A stretch of DNA of 64,000 bases from Dimorphilus gyrociliatus (Eukaryota; Animalia; Annelida). The stretch covers positions 3,095,891 to 3,159,890 of the forward strand of contig CAJFCJ010000002.1 of NCBI GenBank assembly GCA_904063045.1, given 5' to 3'. The first letter of the stretch is position 1; the number at the start of each line of letters is the position of its first letter. The notes beneath the pieces were generated by a model. It was not told the origin of the DNA and ran no database searches. It saw nothing but the letters and a program-made list of their open reading frames with translations. Shown here piece after piece: positions 13,101-28,200 of this stretch. A program made the translations under genes and the position numbers.

Positions 13101-16100
13101 TCTTTGGCATAGATCAGTTTTAATGCTGGAACAATTAGCTATCGATGGATCTTCTAACAACATTCGCCGTCAACAAACTGAATATGAATTTGAAGTGGGC
13201 ATGAGCACGGGTCAGAATGAAGTGTTTGACTGTCTCTGTGAATTGTATTCATTGCTAAGAGAGGAAGATATGGTAGTTGGAATATGGTCTAAACGGGCCA
13301 AATATCCTGAAACTGTTCAAGCTCTAGCTTACGAACAGCATGGTCACTTTGAACATGCACAAACATCGTTCGAAAGCTGTATGAATAAAGCTAGACAAGA
13401 ACATAATACTCAAAATTGTAGTTTGCAACAATGCCCCGAATATAACTTGTGGATACAACATTGGATACGGTGTGCGAAAGAGCTGAATCAATGGGAACAA
13501 CTGCTCGAATTCTGTAACGTCAAAGGTCAAGTTAATCCTGAATTAGCAATGGAGTGCGCCTGGCATGTACCTAATTGGATAATAATGAAAGATGCTATTA
13601 CTCAAGTGGACGGAAATTGCGCAAAGGAGATGAACTGGAAAGTAAATTTATACAAGGGTTACGTACATGTGTGTACTCCTGAAGATCAGCCTTTCCAACC
13701 AGCTGTAAGTTTATTTTGTAATCTTTCAGCACGAACATAATATAATTTCTTTTTATGTAAGCAGCAAGTAGATAAATTTGTGGATGCCTGTGGTAACAAC
13801 GTAATAAGGGAGTGGCGAAGGCTGCCTCATATTGTTTCACACATTCACGTGCAATATTTGCAAGCCTCCCAACAAGTGATGGAGTTATACGAAGCATCTC
13901 AAATACATCAAAACTTACAAGCAAATGCTGCGACCACAAGAAGTGGTGCTGCACTCCATGATATGAAAGCTATTGTTAAAACTTGGAGAAATAGATTACC
14001 TATGATTTCAGATGACTTATCTCACTGGAGCGATATATTCACATGGAGGCATCATCATTATCAGTACATAGTGAATCACTATAACGCACAGGCTCAGCAA
14101 GATACTGTAAGATAAATTTATTTTATTTTATAATGAGATAAACCAAATAATTTTCATTTTGTTTCAGTCTCAAAGTTCAAATGCGATGCTTGGTGTTCAC
14201 GCATCAGCGCAAGCTATTATACATTTTGGTAAAATTGCTCGAAAACATTCACAGACTAATGTATGCCTTGATCAGCTTAGCAGGTGAGTTAACGAGACAA
14301 ATAACGTCAAAACCGATATACATGAGTTTGCTTGTTTGTACTAAAATTTTCCTCATCAACAGAATTCACACCATTGCCAGTGTTCCTATTGTTGACTGTT
14401 TTAACAAGATACGTCAACAAGTTAAATGCTATTTACAAATGTCATCTGTATTGGGTAAAAATGAATTACAAGAAGGATTGGAAGTTATTGAATCTACGAA
14501 CTTGAAATATTTTACTAAGGAGATGACAGCAGAATTTTATGCTTTGAAAGGAATGTTCCTTGCCCAAATAGGTCGTTCAGAAGATGCTAATAAAGCTTTT
14601 TCAGCTGCAGTTCAAATGCATGATTTCTTAGTGAAAGCATGGGCGCTATGGGGAGATTACCTGGAAGCTCTGTTTACGCGAGACAGAAATATTCAAGTCG
14701 GAGTTTCTGCTATAACATGTTTCCTCCACGCCTGTCGACACCAAAATGAAAGTAAATCAAGGAAATATTTGGCCAAAGTTCTATGGTTATTAACATTTGA
14801 TGAAGCCGAGAAACAAACACTTTCAGAGGCCGTTGAGAGATATAATGTAGGAGTTCCACCTATCCAATGGCTTACATGGATACCACAGCTTTTAACTTGT
14901 TTAATAAGGAATGAAGGAAAATTAATGCTAAATTTATTAACTCAAGTTGGCCGTATGTACCCGCAAGCCGTTTACTTTCCTATTCGAACTCTTTATTTGA
15001 CTTTAAAATTGGAACAAAGAGAAAGAGGTTAAACTCAATTCATTATCTTCAACAAAAATAATTTAAATTAAATTTTATTTACAGCTGCAAAAACTAGTGC
15101 TCCTCAAACACCAACGACACCACAAACACCTAATCCATTAAGCACTCAGCAACCAATAACTCCACAATCAGCTGAACCAAACGGAGGCCAAACTGCTCAG
15201 AGTGGCGCACCAATACGTGCGACTCCTTCAATGTGGCGTTGTTCTAAAATAATGCATAGTCAAAGAGAATCACATCCTTCTATTCTTAGCTCCTTAGAAG
15301 GCATCGTTGATCAATTTGTATGGTTTAGGGAACGATGGCATGAAGAAGTTCTCAGACAGTTACGTCAAGCTCTAGCCAAGTGTTACACTCTAGCATTTGA
15401 GAGTCGTCAAGTGGTGTCAGAAGCTAGTATCAGCCCACATACTCGAAATTTCATCAAAAAGATTGTATCGACCTTTGGTACTGGTCTCGAACAGGCTAAT
15501 ACCCCTGTTTCAAATCCTGGGTCTGCAGCTTCAGAATCTTTAGCTAGAAGAGCTCAACTATCTCGACAAGATCCAGTATTTCAGAGAATGAAGCTACAAT
15601 TTACAACTGATTTTGATTTTTCTCAACCCTCTTGTACTAAATTACACACCGTTATGAACAAACTGAAGAAATGGATTAAAATTTTAGAAGCGAAGACAGT
15701 TTCGTTGCCCAAATCTCACCTTATTGAAGAAAAATGTCGTTTCTTGAGTAATTTTTCTACCAGTACGGCTGAAGTGGAATTACCAGGCGAATTTTTGCTG
15801 CCAAAAGCCTCTCATTCGCATTATTATGTTAGAATTGCTCGATTTATGCCTACAGTTCAAATTGTTGATAAATATGGAACAGCAGCCAGAAGAATATATA
15901 TAAGGGGTCAGAATGGAAAGATATATCCATACTTAGTTGTAAGCGATAGAATGATGACCGAATCAAGACGAGAGGAGAGGGTTTTGCAACTATTAAGAAT
16001 GCTCAATCATTTTCTTTATAAACAAAAGGTAATTGGAATATCTTTATTTAAATTGGTTTTTTTAATTTAGGTTTTTTTTTCATGTTTTGCAGGAGACTTG

Positions 16101-17108
16101 CAGGCGATTGTTGAATTTCACCGTACCAAGAGTTGTTGCTGTATCACCTCATACACAACTCATAGAAGATAATCTATCTTCCATTTCTCTTTCTCATGTA
16201 TATAAACAACTGTGTATGAAAAGGGGAGTTGAGGCCGACCTTCCAATAGTAAGATACTATGAGAGAGTAGCAACAGTTCAAGCCAGGGGTAACTCGGCTT
16301 CTCATCAAGTTCTACGAGAAATCCTAAAGGAAGTACAAAATAATACTGTTCCAAAAACTCTTTTGAAAGAATGGGCTCTTGAAATCTTACCAAATGCCAC
16401 AGAATTTTGGACATTTAGGAAAAATCTTACTTTACAACTGGCTTTGGCTGGTTTAGCAGAATTTGTTTTGCATTTAACAAGAACAAATATAGATATGATG
16501 TACGTTCACCAAGACAGTGGATTCCTGAGTATCTCCTATTTTAAATTCGATGTCGACGATCAAAGTGGAGACTTGCATTCAAATAGACCAGTTCCATTTA
16601 GATTAACACCCAATATAGCTGAATTATTGGCCCCAACTGGTGTCAATGGCCCACTTGCAGCTGCAATGCTAGCAGCTGCAAGGTGCTTTGTACAACCTCA
16701 ATATAAATTCTCAGCTCTACTCAAAGCAATTCTAAGAGATGAATATATTACTTGGCATAAAAAGGTAACTTTTTTGTTATTTTGTTCTGTTAGAGTATCA
16801 TTAAAACTTTTATTATATCTAAATAGCAACAAGATGAAAGAAATCCTGGAGCCCAGCCCGTAGATATGGAAGGTGAAGTACTAATTCAAATGGTTCAAAA
16901 AGCTACCAGTGCCATAACAACACGTCTTCAAAGTAAGCCTAAATAATAGTTACTCTAGGAAAATTTATATAAATTGTAATTGTTAAATTTCAATTAAGGT
17001 TTGGCGTCATTGGACGGTGCAGATTCAAAAGTAAGCACACTAGTTGCGGCTGCTAACAGTCTGGATAATCTCTGTAGAATGGATCCAGCTTGGCATCCTT
17101 GGTTATAA
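4191..17108 (+). CDS. TRRAP: Transformation/transcription domain-associated protein (PIKK pseudokinase scaffold of SAGA and NuA4/TIP60), complete, about 27 exons
   Basis: Exons join in frame via GT-AG introns from MAAHLAQTSDACRQY to FATC ..DNLCRMDPAWHPWL*. Hallmarks: ENEENVLICLRIIIE-type, VSQGLRTLELCVDNLQPDFLY, FAT region, and pseudokinase segment LHLTRTNIDMMYVHQDSG..YFKFD lacking the PIKK catalytic D/N/DFG. One exon (7304-12541) is 5238 nt. Confidence 0.98.
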
Positions 17109-17730: not shown

Positions 17731-19089
17731 TCATAATGAAAAGTTCCTTGTAATTAGATTATTGTTGTTATCGACAAAATAGAGGATAACTTGATCTTTC
17801 AATACTTTGTTAAATGCTAAACGAAAGTTTCTAAGCTTCTTTCCAATTTTGTAGGCAGTACCCTCAAGATTAGAAGGATTGACGAGAAATATTAAATCTT
17901 TGTTCGATAAACAACAATACCCTTCTTTTAGTTTCGGTATAAGATTGTCTTGAATTGATAAATCATATTTCGTTTCTAACTCAACATTAGCGTACAAGAA
18001 TGATTTGTCATTTATTCGGACGACTAAGATGCTCGTATCTTCCAGCAATAAAATCAATTGATCGTCGACAAGTTTTGAATCTACAATATCCAGATCGTCG
18101 TCAATACTGAATTCCCATATAATATCAAATTTCGAATCGAGATGAACAATTTTTCCTGACATAGTAAGAATAACTCCGCTGTTAACGCAGAATATATTTG
18201 TCCATCCTTTTTCGGTAGAAAATTTTTCTCGTAATTGATACTTAACCCCTCTCTTTCCTAAACTATATAGTAATAGTTTCTCAACATCGAACAAATAGAT
18301 AGATGATTTTGAATGTGATTCACTTGCTAATTTTACGGTTTTGCATCCGCAATTATCCAATGTTACAAGATTATTCGGTTGCTTACCATTTTCTAATTGA
18401 AAAACAGAATATTTTTCTTTTAAAGCATGTTCAAGGACTAGAACCAAAATTGATTGCCTGAATGAGCAAATTTGTTTGATTTCACCATCGAATGAAGTGG
18501 TTTTCTCGTGATCCGAATGAGATAATGACCCAATAGAGAATCTCTGCTGAAAATCATTCATGTCAAACTTCAATTGTCGTTTCATTATATTAGCCACGCC
18601 CATCCTTAATCTATCTTCTATATCTTTAGCATACTTCTTACTAAGCTCATTACTTAGAGTTAAACCTTGATAATCTACAAAGCTCTGCTGGTATTCTTTC
18701 AATTTCTCGTGTAGATTGTAGTAATAATCACCAACCTCTTTATTCAAAATTTTCACTTGTTCATCCATCTTCTTCTCAAGAGCTTTCTGATGACCAACGA
18801 TCTTCTTAAGGACATTTTCTTTCTCAATTATTAAATTCTGTGTTTCTTCCTTCATAAAGATCTCAAAATCTATTTTGTTCCTTTCAAGACTCGATATTGT
18901 TACACTTGGCCATTCAACAAGTTTCTGACAAAGAGGACACTCTAATCGATCTAAATGTTTGTACTTGCTACTTTCCTTCATCAATTTTAGACAATCAGAA
19001 CAAAATCCATGAGTATTATCACAAGGAAGAACAAAAATATCATCAAGAATCTTATCGCAAAAACGGCAAATTTGATTTAAATCAGACAT
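17731..19089 (-). CDS. Intronless RING (C3HC4) - coiled coil - probable beta-propeller protein, TRIM-like without B-box, 452 aa
   Basis: C-x2-C-x11-C-x3-H-x2-C-x2-C-x17-C-x2-C at the N-terminus; E/K/Q/L-rich helical segment; C-terminal ~250 aa of short beta-strand-like repeats (IYLFDVE, LLLYSLG, IVHLDSKFDIIWEF). The propeller fold is inferred. Confidence 0.8.
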   Translation of the reverse strand: MSDLNQICRFCDKILDDIFVLPCDNTHGFCSDCLKLMKESSKYKHLDRLECPLCQKLVEWPSVTISSLERNKIDFEIFMKEETQNLIIEKENVLKKIVGHQKALEKKMDEQVKILNKEVGDYYYNLHEKLKEYQQSFVDYQGLTLSNELSKKYAKDIEDRLRMGVANIMKRQLKFDMNDFQQRFSIGSLSHSDHEKTTSFDGEIKQICSFRQSILVLVLEHALKEKYSVFQLENGKQPNNLVTLDNCGCKTVKLASESHSKSSIYLFDVEKLLLYSLGKRGVKYQLREKFSTEKGWTNIFCVNSGVILTMSGKIVHLDSKFDIIWEFSIDDDLDIVDSKLVDDQLILLLEDTSILVVRINDKSFLYANVELETKYDLSIQDNLIPKLKEGYCCLSNKDLIFLVNPSNLEGTAYKIGKKLRNFRLAFNKVLKDQVILYFVDNNNNLITRNFSL

Positions 19090-19262: not shown

Positions 19263-20762
19263 TTATATAACATTACCTCTAAAATGTCTAACAATTAAGA
19301 TATTATTAGTAGTAATGATGTAAAAAATGACACCTCTTACGGTCAAATGGTAATCAAATTGTTTACAATTGTGAAAAACTTTATCAAACGGATAAACAGT
19401 ATCTAAGCGTTTGTTTACGTTAACAACATGAATAAATTCACAATTTTCATTCAGAAGGATACTTCCATTGCATAGAGGATAAACTATTTGTTTTTGAAAT
19501 GAAATTATATCATTTGCAGGTTCGTTTCTATCGAAATGGGTGGAGGTAGAATGAAGTCTTAGAATAGTGCCATTTTCCAATAAAAGTATTAAATCAGAAG
19601 TTGAATTGCATCTCATATCGATAATTCTATTTTTGAAATATGATGTTGTATATAATTTTTTGAATTGTTTCGTATTCCATTTTTCTATAAGTTTACAATT
19701 ATTTCTCAATATATAGAGATAATTTTCAGATGATTTCAATGCGTTTACTACGCCATCTGTTGTTGGAATAGACTGAATGTTTTCTAATTCATAACTATCT
19801 TTATTCTGTTGTAAAGTCTTTACATTGTTTTCAGTTTGTAAGAGTCGCATTAGATTCATTTTAGGACTAATTTTCATAAGAAATAGACAATCGCTAGCTG
19901 ACAGTTTGTACGTAGATTCAGAATTCTCTTTCCATTGTATAATTGATAAATTATCGCCGTTCCATTGAGCTTTTCTCGAAATCCTGTATAAGTACTGATT
20001 ATTCGAAAGGTCCTCTTTAGTTAAAGTATAAAAAGCATCTTTTGAACAAGTGATATCTTGAACAAGGCCATCATAGGTGTATTGGCAATCCAGACCATTA
20101 AACGTACTCATAGTCTTTGTTAGATGACCTAAATCGATTGAATTTGTCTTAACAAATCTTATTGAATAATTGAGAATTGATTCTAAATGATCAATTAAGC
20201 GAGTTTGGGTTTCTTTCAAACTAAAATTATCTTGATTATTAGAAGAGATCAGTTGAAAATCTCTAAGCGAATTTAATAAAACATTCAAATCCATGTCTTT
20301 ATTCTTATAGAACTTTTCAAGATTTCTTCTAAGCATATCCCGCTTAACTTTTAATCTTTCGGTAAGACGTTCTAGTTCTCTATCAATCAAAATCAACTCT
20401 AATTCTTTTCTTTTATGAAGATCATCTAAGACAAAGATTACTTCTTGTTTCATCTGTTCACAAATCTCATTCCAGTAATTATCATTCCTTCTCTCGCAAA
20501 TGGGATTTAGTAGTAATGATAAAACTGTTTTATTCAGCTCACTCCAATTATGTTCATTATTACATAACGTACAACGGAATTTATCATTAATTGTCATTCG
20601 ACTAGTTCGTATTAGCCGTTCAAAGCATTTTAAGCATAGAAGACGAGTTGAATCGCAAGGTAGACAACATAAATATTCATCAAAATTAGTAACTTTACAA
20701 ATTGAACATATTTGATGATAAATATCCTCTTTCATATCGTATCCTTCATTATGGTAGGCCAT
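19263..20762 (-). CDS. Intronless paralogue: degenerate RING - coiled coil - probable beta-propeller, 499 aa
   Basis: C-x2-C-x13-C-x3-R-x2-C-x2-C-x17-C-x2-C (Arg at the His position); coiled coil ELELILIDRELERLTERLKVKRDMLRRNLE; strand-rich C-terminus. AATAAA follows the stop on the - strand. Confidence 0.8.
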   Translation of the reverse strand: MAYHNEGYDMKEDIYHQICSICKVTNFDEYLCCLPCDSTRLLCLKCFERLIRTSRMTINDKFRCTLCNNEHNWSELNKTVLSLLLNPICERRNDNYWNEICEQMKQEVIFVLDDLHKRKELELILIDRELERLTERLKVKRDMLRRNLEKFYKNKDMDLNVLLNSLRDFQLISSNNQDNFSLKETQTRLIDHLESILNYSIRFVKTNSIDLGHLTKTMSTFNGLDCQYTYDGLVQDITCSKDAFYTLTKEDLSNNQYLYRISRKAQWNGDNLSIIQWKENSESTYKLSASDCLFLMKISPKMNLMRLLQTENNVKTLQQNKDSYELENIQSIPTTDGVVNALKSSENYLYILRNNCKLIEKWNTKQFKKLYTTSYFKNRIIDMRCNSTSDLILLLENGTILRLHSTSTHFDRNEPANDIISFQKQIVYPLCNGSILLNENCEFIHVVNVNKRLDTVYPFDKVFHNCKQFDYHLTVRGVIFYIITTNNILIVRHFRGNVI

Positions 20763-21733: not shown

Positions 21734-24483
21734 ATGAAAACAAAAAGCTCTCCTATTAGAAGAAAGCTTAAAGCTTCGACGAGATTGAATACAAATAATT
21801 TGACAATGATTAGTCAAGGATCGCTAAATCGTTTAATTAATAGAGAAGAGAAAGTTGAGATTACGTTACCTAATCTTCTAAAGTCAGCGTGTACTAATAA
21901 AGTACAAATGATAAAGGAAAATCATGACGGAGAGGCGGATAATAATCTGTAATAAAATAGTTTAAATTATTTCTTCAATTCTTAAAGTTAATTGAATTTA
22001 TTTTCATTAAAAAAAAAAGACGTAACGCAGACATCTGTAAAGGATGGGAGAGTGTAACAAAGGGATCAAATTTATGCAGGAATGAGAATGCGTTTCTGCC
22101 ACCGTTCCAACTAAATCACAACCATATGCAAGAATGCTTACAAGATAAAAAACAGAGTTTTCAATCAAATAATAACAAACAAACGAACAAGATCGATTCC
22201 TATCACCATCAATCTTTGAAATGTGTTAATAATCCATATAAATTAACAAACTATGAAAATTCTCCTAAAATTCATCGTATTAATAAGTTATTTGACTGCA
22301 AATCGCAAACACCAACATGCGAATCTTTTGTATCAAGTAAAGCTATTGAATATTCTTGCATTGATGAACCTATACTATGGAGGTTAAATAAAACGAAAGA
22401 TTTTTTCTATGGTAACAATACCTTACGTAATAAAAAACGCCCCGTAGAGATGAATTCAATCGCATCAAAAATATCATGCGGATGTGAATGTCTGGATAAT
22501 AAATATTGGTCAACATTCAATTTAGCTGAATGGAGTAAAAATTGTAAGAATATCGACGAATTTATTAGGTTAAAGGAGAGAAAGAAAGAGAAGAGTTTAC
22601 TAAATGAACTTGTAGAGAGAAGGGGAAATGGTAGGAGGCGCGGGACGGGACTGAATTGGGAAATTTAGGATAAAAAATGTAACAGAATATCAACTTTTTT
22701 CTCTCCTTCATCGATTTTCTAAATAGCTTTAAAGATTTTAATGAAAATAGAAAAAACGATTTATTTACTAACGAGCTGTCAGAATCTGCTATTAATAAAG
22801 AGGAATTTATAAAAACAAATTCACTGATTGACAGTAAAGAAGAGCAGAAATCATCCAATCTTCCTTTGATAACTATCTCAAAACATGATAAAAATGTTAA
22901 AGATGAATGTGTACATAGTAATGAGAATATAGGTATTGAAATTAGGAAAAATAGTTCATATTCAAAGAACTTGTCGAAATTCTGGAAAAACTTAATAGAT
23001 AAGATAAAAAGTTCAACCAAAAATAATACAAATTCTCATCAGCATATGAGTAAAAAATTACGGCTACCCATTCAAATAACACCGACTGAAATTTCTTGGC
23101 AATTTTCACATGTAACTACGCCATCTACCGACGAACTTGATGCCTTATCTTTATCTGACGACAAAGATACTTATTGTGAGAATACAGATAATAAAAATAC
23201 TGATTTATTAATACAAATGAAATTTGTATTGAAGATAACGCATTATGATTTTGGTTGTTTGGAAAAAGTTACTAAAAATAAAGGAAACTTTTTAATTAGT
23301 ATTAAAGAGAAAATAAGGATGATATCAATTGATAAAAATAGGAAGATACTATCAAATAGAGTAGTTAATAGGTTGGTAAACGATGAAGAAAGTTACCTTT
23401 CTCTTTCTGATAGTTTTCTGTCACAAACCACTGATATTGTATCATCGAGAACGGAGAGTGAATTAAGAACTACGGAAGACGTCCTATCAAGCGATGGGGA
23501 GCAAGATGATAAGAATTATATAGAAGGTATCGACAACTCAGATATACAACCACGAGAAAGTCGAGCATATTCGTCAAACAGTCAGGGTTCGAACTCCTAC
23601 ACAGAACAGCGGTCTGGCGGTTTGATTTACGACGACCCCCTGCATTCGAAATACGAATCCAACAGCGATAAAGAATCCAGCAAACAGATTTCTATTCAAA
23701 CATACAACCTAGATTCGCCCAAATGTATAAAAGCAGAAAAAAAATGGATTAATGATAAGGATAATGATAACATTAACTTTGGATTTATTGGCAATAATCT
23801 CTTGACTCATACTTTAATCATAGCTTTCATAAATTCCAGTAAAAAAATTCCCACCAACCGTTAATCTGTTTTTATCATAGGGCTATTTAGTAATAAACTT
23901 CTCTCTTCTTTTCTAGGTTCCATACAAGGGATAAATATATACGTAAGCCATAGTGATTCTGATAGAATTATTCAAAAGGTATATATAGATATAATTACAT
24001 TTTCAATAAGCTAAGTTGATATTGTGCTCTTTTTCCATCTCTCTCTCTCTCTCTCTCTAATCTATGACTCAATTCTGATTTTAAAGAAGGGAATAAATAA
24101 ACTGGAATCTAGAAGTAAAGTAATCATCAATTCCGATGTACTTTTTATAACTTTTAGCGATTTTTATGATTCTCATTTACTAAAAGAGCTACCTGATTTA
24201 AATAGTTGTAATAAATTAATAGCAACAGTCAGTACTAGCAAGATGTCAGTTAGTTTGGCGGATATATGTAGAGTAAGTATAAACAACTACTTTATCAATA
24301 TAGATTTAACATCTTCTACATTCTTCCTTTCTCCCCACATTTTCCTGTAGTCATTGGACTTTCAGGGATGTCACTTACATATTTTAGTAAATCAAGCAAT
24401 AGTTGTAAATTGTGGTATTTCTATCATTATCCCAGGTAATTTTACTTGCATTTGATATTCTTATCAATGTTTGGGTAATCGTC

Positions 24484-24525
<42 letters not shown>

Positions 24526-25092
24526 TTCTCCCTCTCTCACTTAGGAACAGAAGTAACGGAATCAGATGTCTTATTGATTAAAGAATATTTCAATGTTTTC
24601 GGCATGACTATAACATGTAAAGAATTAAGTTTAGATGCTATACAAGCTTTAGTATTCGATGGAATAGCTTTAGTAAATCTTTTTTATACATTTTATTCAT
24701 TTTACAACGAAATAAATAATAAAGGAACAATTTTACCTTTTTCTTTTAATTCGTTGACTTATATAAGTGGGCTTACATAATAGAATCTTTAACTATGGCT
24801 GGTTCTCGGCAAGGAATTCCTAAAAGAGTATCATTAGAATCAATTTCTTACACCCTCTTGGTATTGTTATATTATGTATTATTCACACAAGTATTTTATG
24901 AAATGTAATTACCGAAAGGGTTCTTCAAAACTGTTAATGGAATCTAACGCCCAACCATCCGAATTAAAGGACGCTCTAGTCGGCCCCAACAACCCTTCAA
25001 TTAAAGGTTTATTTGAAATGGAAAAATGTCTTGTAAGGTCAACAATTATGAACGCCGTTGAAAAACTTGTAAATTCCTATAAGAAATTTTAA
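21734..25092 (+). CDS. Pyrroline-5-carboxylate reductase (PYCR/proC)-like protein with degenerate active site and ~600 aa N-terminal low-complexity extension; 9 exons, about 867 aa
   Basis: Exons 21734-21948, 22020-22568, 22727-23838, 23917-23978, 24087-24272, 24351-24435, 24545-24672, 24768-24860, 24919-25092; all GT-AG and phase-consistent, 2604 nt. The C-terminal ~265 aa (NINFGFIG..SDVLF..GTEVTESD..DAIQAL..GIPKRVSL..LLGSSKLLMESNAQPSELKDALVGP..FEMEK..RSTIMNAVE) is colinear with PYCR1. The first two exons are less certain. Confidence 0.85.
24038..24058. repeat. (CT)n microsatellite in a PYCR-like intron, serving as polypyrimidine tract
   Basis: TCTCTC run before the acceptor at 24086; a second (CT)n run lies at about 24487-24522 before the acceptor at 24544. 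Confidence 0.9.
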
Positions 25093-25275: not shown

Positions 25276-28200
25276 CTAAGATGCTGTCATCCATCTGACG
25301 AAGTTCGACCTTCTATCTCGATCGGACTGAGAGAGGGCATCTATACTAAAACAATGTGGTGCTGGAGGAGCTTCTCGTATACTTTTCTGCTGAGGTTGAG
25401 CAGGTTGAGGGTGTTGGATTTGATTTTGCTGGTTAGAACCCGTTTCACCGTGAGTTCTCAAGTGCGTTTTCAAGTTGTTCTGAAGGGCGAATTTACTACC
25501 GCAGATATGGCATTCGTGAGGCTTTTCGCCCGTATGCAATAGTTGATGATTTCGTAGGTTTGTTGGTTTACTGAAACCTCTTTGACAAACTTCGCATCTA
25601 TACGGCCATCTACCATTGTGAACGTACATATGCGATTTTAAATCTCCGGGGGTTGGGAAGGACTTGGAACAAAGAGTGCATTTATGCGGCTTTTCCTTTT
25701 TGTGAGTCATTCTATGATAGTAAAGATTCGAACTAGCAGTAAACCTCTTTCCACAAACTTCGCACTGATGAGGTTTTTCTCCCGAATGAATTCTTCGATG
25801 AGTGTTCAAACTGGACGACGTTGAAAAACCTTTACCACAGACGTCGCATATATGGGGTTTCTCGCCAGTATGCGTTCTCATATGGCGTCTTAACAATGAT
25901 GGCCTGTCAAACTTTTTACCGCATACGGAACACGGTAACCATGTTCTCTCTCTTTGTCTCTTTTGAGGTTGGGTGGGTAGTCTACTTGGGCCGTCGTCAA
26001 CGGCAGCTGGTCTGAGGAAGGGTGTGCTAGTGAGAAGGGCGTTACCGAATAAAGAGGGTGGGGAAAGTAAACCCGTATTGGGAGCCAATAGATGACCAGA
26101 TAACACTTGATGATCCGATCCAGGAGGGGTTCTTCTCCATTCATATCTATCGGGCACCTTTTCCTCTTCTCTCGAGTGTTCTTTACTCTATAAAAAAAAA
26201 ACATTTAATTATACAAATGCAAAAATTAGATTTACGTAATTTTGACTATTATTAATGATATCATTTGGCTTTTGTACAAGCGTAACAGCTGGATCGAAAA
26301 TGTTATAAATACAAAAACGTAAAATGGGAAATAAAACCATTCGCATTTTTAAAGAAAAGGGAACAGTTGTATAATTTCTTTTTCTCGGGTAAAAAATAAG
26401 AAAATCATCGAACAGGAACGGGAAAATTGTCGGGGGAATGGCCAAATGTTGGTCCGTAACGACTTTTTGTTTATTTATGCTTACCCTTAATGAAAAATAC
26501 TGCGAATCGTCGCTAATGGCTGATCGTTTAGATAGATCTTCAGCAGATATTGATAAGCTGTTTGTTGCTCTTCCACTATCGTCAGTAATATTCTTTTGAG
26601 TTTGAGTACAACCCTCTTTAATGTTTGCAGTAGTTGCCGATCTATGGCTTAAATCGAATCTGGAGAGGAAGGAAAAGAATGAAAATATATTATTTATTAT
26701 TATTTATATATTAGCTAAAAAGCCGTATCCAATTAAGATTTAGAAATAAAAAGTAAAAATAAACATACTTGGCCCTTAATTCTCCATTAGCTTCTACGGT
26801 TCTTATTATATGAAAAACGGCCAATTCATTTTCATCATAAATAGCTTCTACATTAGCTTCATCATCCGAATTGCATATGCTCAAAAATCGAACCCAATTA
26901 CAATGTCGAATTTTTTCACCCTCAACCTCTTCCGTTTCTTCAAAGCATCCGAATTTAAATCGTATCTATAAGAGATAAGAAAATCTTTCAATATAGAGTA
27001 TATAAGGTTAAAACATTAGTACGTTTTTTATTATTTTAATTGTTATATTTACTTGATTTAATAGGCCTATTAAGAATAACATACGACCCACGGTCAGTAA
27101 ATTTTGCGTAACTATTACGGAGGGTCTTTATCGTTGAGTACTCGCTGTAATGACAGCTTTATCGGGATAAACTAGGGACATGAAAGTCTGTTTAATACAA
27201 ACCATGACCGCTCGATGAGTTTGCTCGTTAATTGTATTGTTTAAAGAGGGAAGGGGTACGAAAGGGTGAAGGATAGAAAAGAGAAAGTGCTCTTTATTCT
27301 CTTTCTTTCGTTCTGACTTTTATGTAACTTAATTAAGAAAACTTTTAATTAAAATGGCCCTTTCCATTACTTTTCCTAGTCTATAGACAAAAAAATGTGT
27401 GGAATATAAAGAAAGAAAGGAAGGAATGGGTACTTTTCATTCTTTTATACTTAATTGAAAAGAATGAATGAATGAATGATATCACTAGTCAAAATGAAGG
27501 TGAAATTTACAATAGCGAGAGATATGTAAGAGTAAACTGTGAAGATTTCAAACAAAAGGAGGAGTGAAAAGTTTCGGCAAATGGCTCTAAAATATATAGA
27601 CATAACGCACCGATCCGTTAGTTTGTGTTGTTTTTTTTCGATTGTTTTTATCTAATTTAACGCATCAGCGTTAAAAATAGAGATAGATTACGAAAGTGAA
27701 TATAATAAAGGGGAAAAGGACGCCGACATTCGGCGAAAACGATGGGGGAGGAAACGACCTCGTGACTTTCGAACAACAACAAAAACAGATGCGCCAAAAT
27801 CACACCGCTGCTCACATTCTCGCCCTACTGTTGGTTATGTAATTTTACTTGAAAAGAAAGGTGCCGGCCGCCCTTTTTCATCATTGCCCCTTAATGAACG
27901 ACTTTGAAAAATTGACGACGTAACGCCTACTACCGTATACTTATGAAAGTTAATTAGGTAATTACTAATTCGACCAGGCGTTAACAGCTGCGAAAGAAAA
28001 AAGGGTAAATGAATGAAGGGCTTGCGCAAAGTGGGAAAAAAAGGAAGGGGAAGACAGCTGTTATCCCAACTTGGGTCTTCTATCTCCGCTGGACTTCTCC
28101 CTTTTCTCTTTATATCCCTTTACTTTATCCCAATGGGAAGGCAGGATGGATAGGGCTTATCATTTGTAAGCACGTGATTCCTATTAGAAAACTATTGGGA

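Follow-up and report, generated by a model that had tools for sequence, protein, structure and literature searches.

A predicted gene in a 64-kb stretch of Dimorphilus gyrociliatus DNA (contig CAJFCJ010000002.1; the whole stretch is referred to here as the window) joins a rewritten homolog of pyrroline-5-carboxylate (P5C) reductase to a long, low-complexity N-terminal arm. The gene lies on the forward strand at 21734–25092. Its C-terminal part can be aligned with P5C reductase (P5CR) from end to end and is under purifying selection, and the loops corresponding to the cofactor- and substrate-binding sites of the enzyme have been replaced. We consider it probable that the gene encodes a lineage-restricted pseudo-enzyme: a copy of a P5C reductase in which the canonical binding of cofactor and substrate was lost, while the fold, and above all its dimerization half, was kept, and which became the C-terminal module of a long, motif-bearing and probably unfolded protein.

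The gene model was read from the genomic DNA and its phases were checked by script. It comprises nine exons with 2604 nucleotides (nt), corresponding to 867 codons and a stop; all eight introns are of the GT-AG type, 58–158 nt in length, and the phases agree across the predicted gene. These results reproduce the coordinates and the exon count of an earlier note on this DNA. The setting is AT-rich eukaryotic DNA (33% G+C) with short introns. The encoded protein would be roughly 760–870 residues long.

Homology of the C-Terminal Domain to P5C Reductase

The C-terminal ~260 residues are a P5CR homolog with a Rossmann-like half and a dimerization half. The last exon (exon 9; 24919–25092) encodes the second half of the dimerization domain, including the substrate loop GPNNPS, and ends at the stop codon. 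Its 57 residues alone score 29.0 bits on the Pfam family P5CR_dimer (PF14748; cut-off 25), over profile positions 49–103, and match the solved P5CRs of Plasmodium, Medicago and Streptococcus as well as human PYCR1 and PYCR2. Exon 8 (24768–24860), the first half of the same domain, matches the adjoining P5CR_dimer positions 19–47 with 12.8 bits. In a related taxon, represented by an 18-kb contig (L001), the orthologous last exon scores 22.6 bits on this family.

The exons on the Rossmann side are so short and so divergent that Pfam, the sequences of solved structures and a thin profile-profile test all failed to pick them up. A deeper profile was therefore needed; we built one from 120 full-length P5CRs and searched every exon separately. 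The end of exon 3 (22727–23838), which encodes the first Rossmann strand and helix (GFIGNNLLTHTLIIAF, from 23781), matched profile positions 5–23 with an E-value (E) of 0.015 (0.009 in L001). Exon 4 (23917–23978), the region of the second strand, gave a weak match at positions 32–37 (E 0.12); its length, phase and GT-AG sites are kept both in L001 and in L006, from a third taxon. Exon 5 (24087–24272), the core of the Rossmann-like domain, covered positions 50–106 (E 1e-4; 1e-5 in L001) and aligns without gaps to two orthologs, at 63% and 53% identity. Exon 6 (24351–24435), which carries the former MTNTP strand, followed at positions 121–128 (E 0.1), and exon 7 (24545–24672), which encodes the end of the N-domain and the hinge, at positions 137–171 (E 2e-6); exon 6 retains its length in L001, and exon 7 both its length and its splice sites. 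Exons 8 and 9 completed the series at positions 182–207 (E 3e-4) and 210–262 (E 1e-16).

The seven C-terminal exons are collinear with the profile in the window, and likewise in L001 except for its very weak exon-4 match. Pairwise alignment to a single P5CR gave the same order for all seven. A complete P5CR scaffold, Rossmann and dimerization domains together, had been proposed in the earlier note from splicing by hand, and this tiling of the profile in order supports it. When all 1948 open pieces of the window, in six frames, were scanned with the profile, only three matched, and all three fall within this locus, on the coding strand and in the order of the profile; the piece holding the Rossmann core had an E-value of 0.27, and the piece at positions 137–171 one of 0.005. 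The same scan found no tandem paralog in the window. The nearest neighbors of exon 5 in a protein language model were all NAD(P)-binding Rossmann families; because their scores lay below 0.9, we count them as a lead only. Judged by its sequence, the C-terminal domain descends from a P5C reductase.

Replacement of the Cofactor and Substrate Motifs

In PYCR1, NAD(P)H is bound by the Rossmann domain, and Ser233 and Thr238 hold a substrate analog (PMC7560826). The substrate loop S-P-G-G-x-T, from Ser233 to Thr238, forms hydrogen bonds with the carboxylate of P5C or proline. Our alignments reveal replacements in both regions. The glycine-rich dinucleotide loop, GlGnmg in the P5CR profile, P0005 and P0009, reads GNNLLT in the window gene, L001 and L006. 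Elsewhere in the window gene, avKP has become TFSD and aaG has become STS (these are the AVKP and CAAG sites of exon 5, the latter now VSTS); pNtPa is now VNQA, within the LVNQA of exon 6, and GSGPA is FDGIA, within the VFDGIA that stands for SGSGPA in exon 7. The SSPGGAT substrate loop of PYCR1 is VGPNNPS in the window gene, the last six residues of which (GPNNPS) correspond to VPKNPS in L001. At the level of single residues, the position of Ser233 is occupied by Gly, the Gly-Gly pair by Asn-Asn, and the position of Thr238 by Ser.

Most of the new sequences are shared between taxa. The segment GFIGNNLLTHTLIIAF is identical in all three, and VSTS (or VSTC), DGIA and P-x-N-P-S recur in the orthologs. 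The former AVKP site differs from taxon to taxon (TFSD, IFNE and TLNK), as expected for a site without function. The loops for both cofactor and substrate are rewritten, and we therefore infer that the domain has lost NAD(P)H-dependent P5C reduction.

Selection and Conservation

Ratios of nonsynonymous to synonymous substitution (dN/dS) were calculated by the Nei-Gojobori method between the window and L001, summed over exons and bootstrapped over codons. For the P5CR-like part as a whole (253 codons) the ratio was 0.27, with a 95% confidence interval (CI) of 0.17–0.39. Selection was strongest on the two dimerization exons (81 codons; dN/dS 0.14, 95% CI 0.06–0.31). Exon 8, at 84% identity to L001, had a ratio of 0.31, and exon 9, which is 80% identical to its ortholog, one of 0.09. 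The Rossmann-side exons gave 0.34 (130 codons; 95% CI 0.19–0.57) and the N-terminal part 0.60 (586 codons; 95% CI 0.48–0.76). None of the bootstrap replicates reached a dN/dS of 1, and the gene is therefore not a pseudogene; the earlier note had likewise argued against decay, and with every exon open and the ratio of the P5CR-like part well below 1 we agree. For comparison, a neighboring zinc-finger gene had a dN/dS of 0.02 and a neighboring open frame of 499 residues one of 0.33. A RING-like neighbor (52% amino-acid identity) yielded no ratio, its synonymous sites being saturated.

Conservation extends to the nucleotide level. Three blocks (23560–23890, 24200–24335 and 24760–24940) have 85–98% DNA identity between taxa, synonymous sites included. 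Introns 3 and 5 are conserved over their first 50–60 nt and intron 8 over its full 58 nt, while the remaining introns cannot be aligned (31–40%). The proportion of synonymous differences (pS) is 0.46–0.50 in the P5CR-like gene versus 0.62–0.75 in three neighboring genes. The nucleotide conservation could possibly reflect intron retention or regulatory elements of the neighboring zinc-finger gene. A known RNA or tRNA was also considered as a cause and rejected: the blocks gave no Rfam match, no tRNA and no unusual folding energy.

Two observations concern the introns themselves. If the intron after exon 5 (24273–24350) is read through, the frame continues for 26 codons until it meets the TAG of the acceptor, and the resulting peptide hardly differs among three taxa; this intron may give rise to a retained-intron isoform that ends inside the Rossmann-like domain. 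In addition, (TC)n microsatellites lie at 24030–24060 and 24484–24535, inside introns 4 and 6, both of which vary in length and are unalignable between taxa.

Orthologs and Distribution

The last exon was compared with 1.84 billion representative sequences in an exhaustive phmmer search without a limit on protein length. Nine matches were obtained: one orthologous exon (P0001, an open frame of 49 residues with 80% identity to the last exon) and eight weaker ones of 35–40 bits, namely seven canonical P5CRs with an S/T-P-G-G-x-T loop and one unrelated repeat protein (P0002). Divergent P5CR-like proteins were absent from the results of this search. Exon 3 was searched among 5.8 billion proteins, both as a single sequence and as a three-sequence profile, and within the range that this search covers (proteins of 204–648 residues) returned only the orthologous exons P0011 and P0012; these come from the taxon of L001 and from the third taxon, that of L006.

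L001, which carries P0001, shares 17 kb of synteny with the window. Its exons 4–8 match those of the window exactly in length, the GT-AG sites are preserved, and no exon is interrupted by a stop. L006 spans exons 1–5 and agrees with the window model. Exon 3 is 50–63% identical among the three taxa. So far, the gene has been found in these three related taxa.

The N-Terminal Arm and Its Fusion to the P5CR-Like Domain

The N-terminal 500–600 residues are of low complexity, with islands of strictly conserved short motifs, and 63–69% of the residues in the N-terminal exons are polar or disorder promoting. These exons match no Pfam family and contain no recognizable domain. Exon 1 (21734–21948), the putative first coding exon, starts at the ATG at 21734 and ends in a phase 2 donor; its protein sequence is 49% identical to that of L001 without gap columns, and its dN/dS is 0.54. 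In exon 2 (22020–22568) the first 70 residues are conserved and the rest is variable. Exon 3 begins with ~350 low-complexity residues, again with conserved islands, before it enters the Rossmann-like domain. AlphaFold2 predictions from three-sequence alignments gave a predicted local distance difference test (pLDDT) score below 50 throughout the N-terminal exons, with means of 36 for exon 2 and 30 for exon 3.

Several observations bear on the first introns. All three taxa share the position of the GTAA donor of exon 1. The acceptor at 22019/22020 fits the phase 2 donor and has equivalents in L001 and L006; two other acceptors in the window also fit. For both introns 1 and 2, in-frame donor and acceptor pairs are present in all three taxa, and coding conservation reaches upstream of an ATG at 22126 in exon 2.

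The fusion can be seen in the DNA itself, as had been claimed from the window sequence: exon 3 runs without a stop from S/D/E/K/N-rich sequence into the GFIG motif at 23781, and this frame is uninterrupted in all three taxa. The open frame of exon 3 is 370 codons long; the longest one obtained when its bases were shuffled 2000 times had 127. Upstream of GFIG, the first in-frame ATG is reached only after ~150 codons, both in the window and in L001; L006 has one at −24, which is not conserved.

A P5CR with a disordered insert also occurs independently. P0003, the canonical P5CR of another organism, has a K/E/D-rich low-complexity insertion of ~130 residues within its Rossmann domain.

Neighboring Genes

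Downstream, on the opposite strand, lies a C2H2 zinc-finger gene that encodes six fingers in a single exon (25276–26157). It is convergent with the P5CR-like gene, with ~180 nt between the two stops, and is 95% identical in protein sequence to its ortholog in L001, within ~6 kb of 78% identical DNA. Upstream, two adjacent, fast-evolving single-exon open frames are encoded on the reverse strand, both syntenic in L001. One (19263–20762; 499 residues; 43% amino-acid identity) is arranged head-to-head with the P5CR-like gene, ~970 nt from the latter's ATG; the other (17731–19089; 452 residues; 52% amino-acid identity) has a weak RING-finger match. Further upstream, consecutive open frames on the forward strand (14181–16863) match the Pfam families FAT and PI3_PI4_kinase and correspond to the C-terminal part of a gene for a PIKK-type kinase.

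Discussion

The reading that we favor is that a P5C reductase copy was converted into a pseudo-enzyme whose assembly domain is still selected. On this model, the P5CR-derived domain would serve as a self-associating module, forming dimers and possibly a pentamer of dimers, which is the typical P5CR assembly, and self-association would display several copies of the N-terminal arm. Alternatively, the domain might pair with a canonical P5C reductase; the earlier note had proposed a dominant-negative partner or a sensor as possible roles. A further elaboration, which is speculative and on balance doubtful, is that dinophilid annelids have a small family in which a silenced P5CR core has been kept for ring-forming, pentamer-of-dimers assembly, producing a multivalent hub with up to ten disordered arms that carry short linear motifs.

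Several points weigh against this interpretation or limit it. Single Rossmann exons match neither the Pfam family PF03807 nor anything in the thin profile-profile test, nor do they match among the sequences of solved structures; of the two HMMER comparisons suggested in the earlier note, the one with P5CR_dimer was passed by the last exon, whereas no single exon reaches PF03807. The same note held that every functional motif is changed. All six replacements that it listed are seen in the alignments, but the statement as a whole goes too far: the Asn of MTNTP survives, as do Pro234 and one Gly of the SGSGPA hinge, and Thr238 is replaced conservatively, by Ser. The presumed loss of cofactor binding is read from the motifs alone. 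Since synonymous sites and three introns are conserved too, selection on the protein cannot be taken as the whole reason why the GFIG block is identical. The N-terminal region had been described as disordered, and the pLDDT values are consistent with this; they are, however, predictions based on three sequences, and with so shallow an alignment a low score is no proof. Finally, no ATG stands at the beginning of exon 1 in L006, so the start codon is not conserved and its position at 21734 is uncertain: this ATG fits the window, yet there may be an upstream exon, or translation may start at 22126.

How do other explanations fare against the same evidence? The gene might be a fast-evolving ortholog of NOXRED1 with an unusually long N-terminal extension, and hence belong to a family that already has a name. 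NOXRED1 has the same two-domain P5CR-like layout preceded by an N-terminal extension, and the idea is compatible with a pseudo-enzyme. We nevertheless regard it as unlikely, given that the last-exon search brought up canonical P5CRs, the repeat protein and the ortholog and no divergent P5CR-like protein, an indirect argument inasmuch as the presence of NOXRED1 among the representatives searched is unconfirmed. It is also possible, though in our view quite unlikely, that the domain continues to work as an oxidoreductase, or serves as a ligand-binding sensor, with GNNLLT and P-x-N-P-S forming a re-tooled, non-canonical site. Such a site would account for the conservation of the replaced loops among three taxa, for the retained MTNTP Asn and the hydroxyl at the Thr238 position, and for constraint on the Rossmann-like exons (dN/dS 0.34); but replacement has removed the second Gly from the dinucleotide loop, Lys-Pro from AVKP and Gly-Gly from the substrate loop, the former AVKP site varies among the taxa, and the conservation of the GFIG block is in part a matter of nucleotides.

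The remaining two explanations question the gene itself. That two genes have been wrongly joined, the P5CR-like exons being transcribed separately, beginning within exon 3 or beyond it, would fit the uncertain 5′ end and start codon and the different rates at which the N-terminal and P5CR-like parts evolve. We judge it very improbable: the exon 3 frame is unbroken over the junction in three taxa, the junction lies within a block of 85–98% DNA identity, no conserved in-frame ATG occurs near GFIG, and without exon 3 the Rossmann fold would miss its first strand and helix. The other is that a copy of the P5C reductase gene is decaying as a pseudogene, in favor of which stand the loss of functional motifs and the recognition of only the C-terminal exon by Pfam. 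Yet none of the nine exons is interrupted, in the window or in L001, the lengths and splice sites of the exons have been preserved, and dN/dS stays well below 1 in every bootstrap replicate, which makes this explanation hardly credible. A selected pseudo-enzyme, built on the P5CR fold and attached to a long arm, remains the interpretation that we prefer.

If this interpretation is correct, a selected copy that keeps the assembly domain with both ligand loops rewritten would show that the P5CR fold has non-catalytic uses, and the gene would offer a natural separation-of-function variant. Should the hub model hold as well, the quaternary structure of a metabolic enzyme would have been put to a new use, as a scaffold. 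The weight of the find is moderate, because it is limited to three related taxa and known from sequence alone. P5C reductases are intensively studied as enzymes of the proline cycle and as cancer targets; in the literature searched, no paper connected P5CR with pseudoenzymes, and NOXRED1, the only P5CR-like animal protein with a name, appeared only in gene lists, in no functional or sequence study.

Two known systems provide the closest comparisons. NOXRED1 (NADP-dependent oxidoreductase domain-containing protein 1) is a divergent P5CR-fold animal protein with an N-terminal extension; the human protein has only ~360 residues, and NOXRED1 is uncharacterized and not known to have any activity. 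P5C reductase itself (ProC; PYCR1, PYCR2 and PYCR3 in humans; PF03807 plus PF14748) shares with the window gene the same two-domain layout over ~260 residues, at a near-constant offset, and the dimerization domain of the window gene is recognized by both Pfam and solved structures. Unlike the enzyme, the window gene has replaced the NAD(P)H loop, AVKP, CAAG, the SGSGPA hinge and the SPGGAT loop, and it carries an N-terminal extension of 500–600 residues that is absent from every P5CR retrieved.

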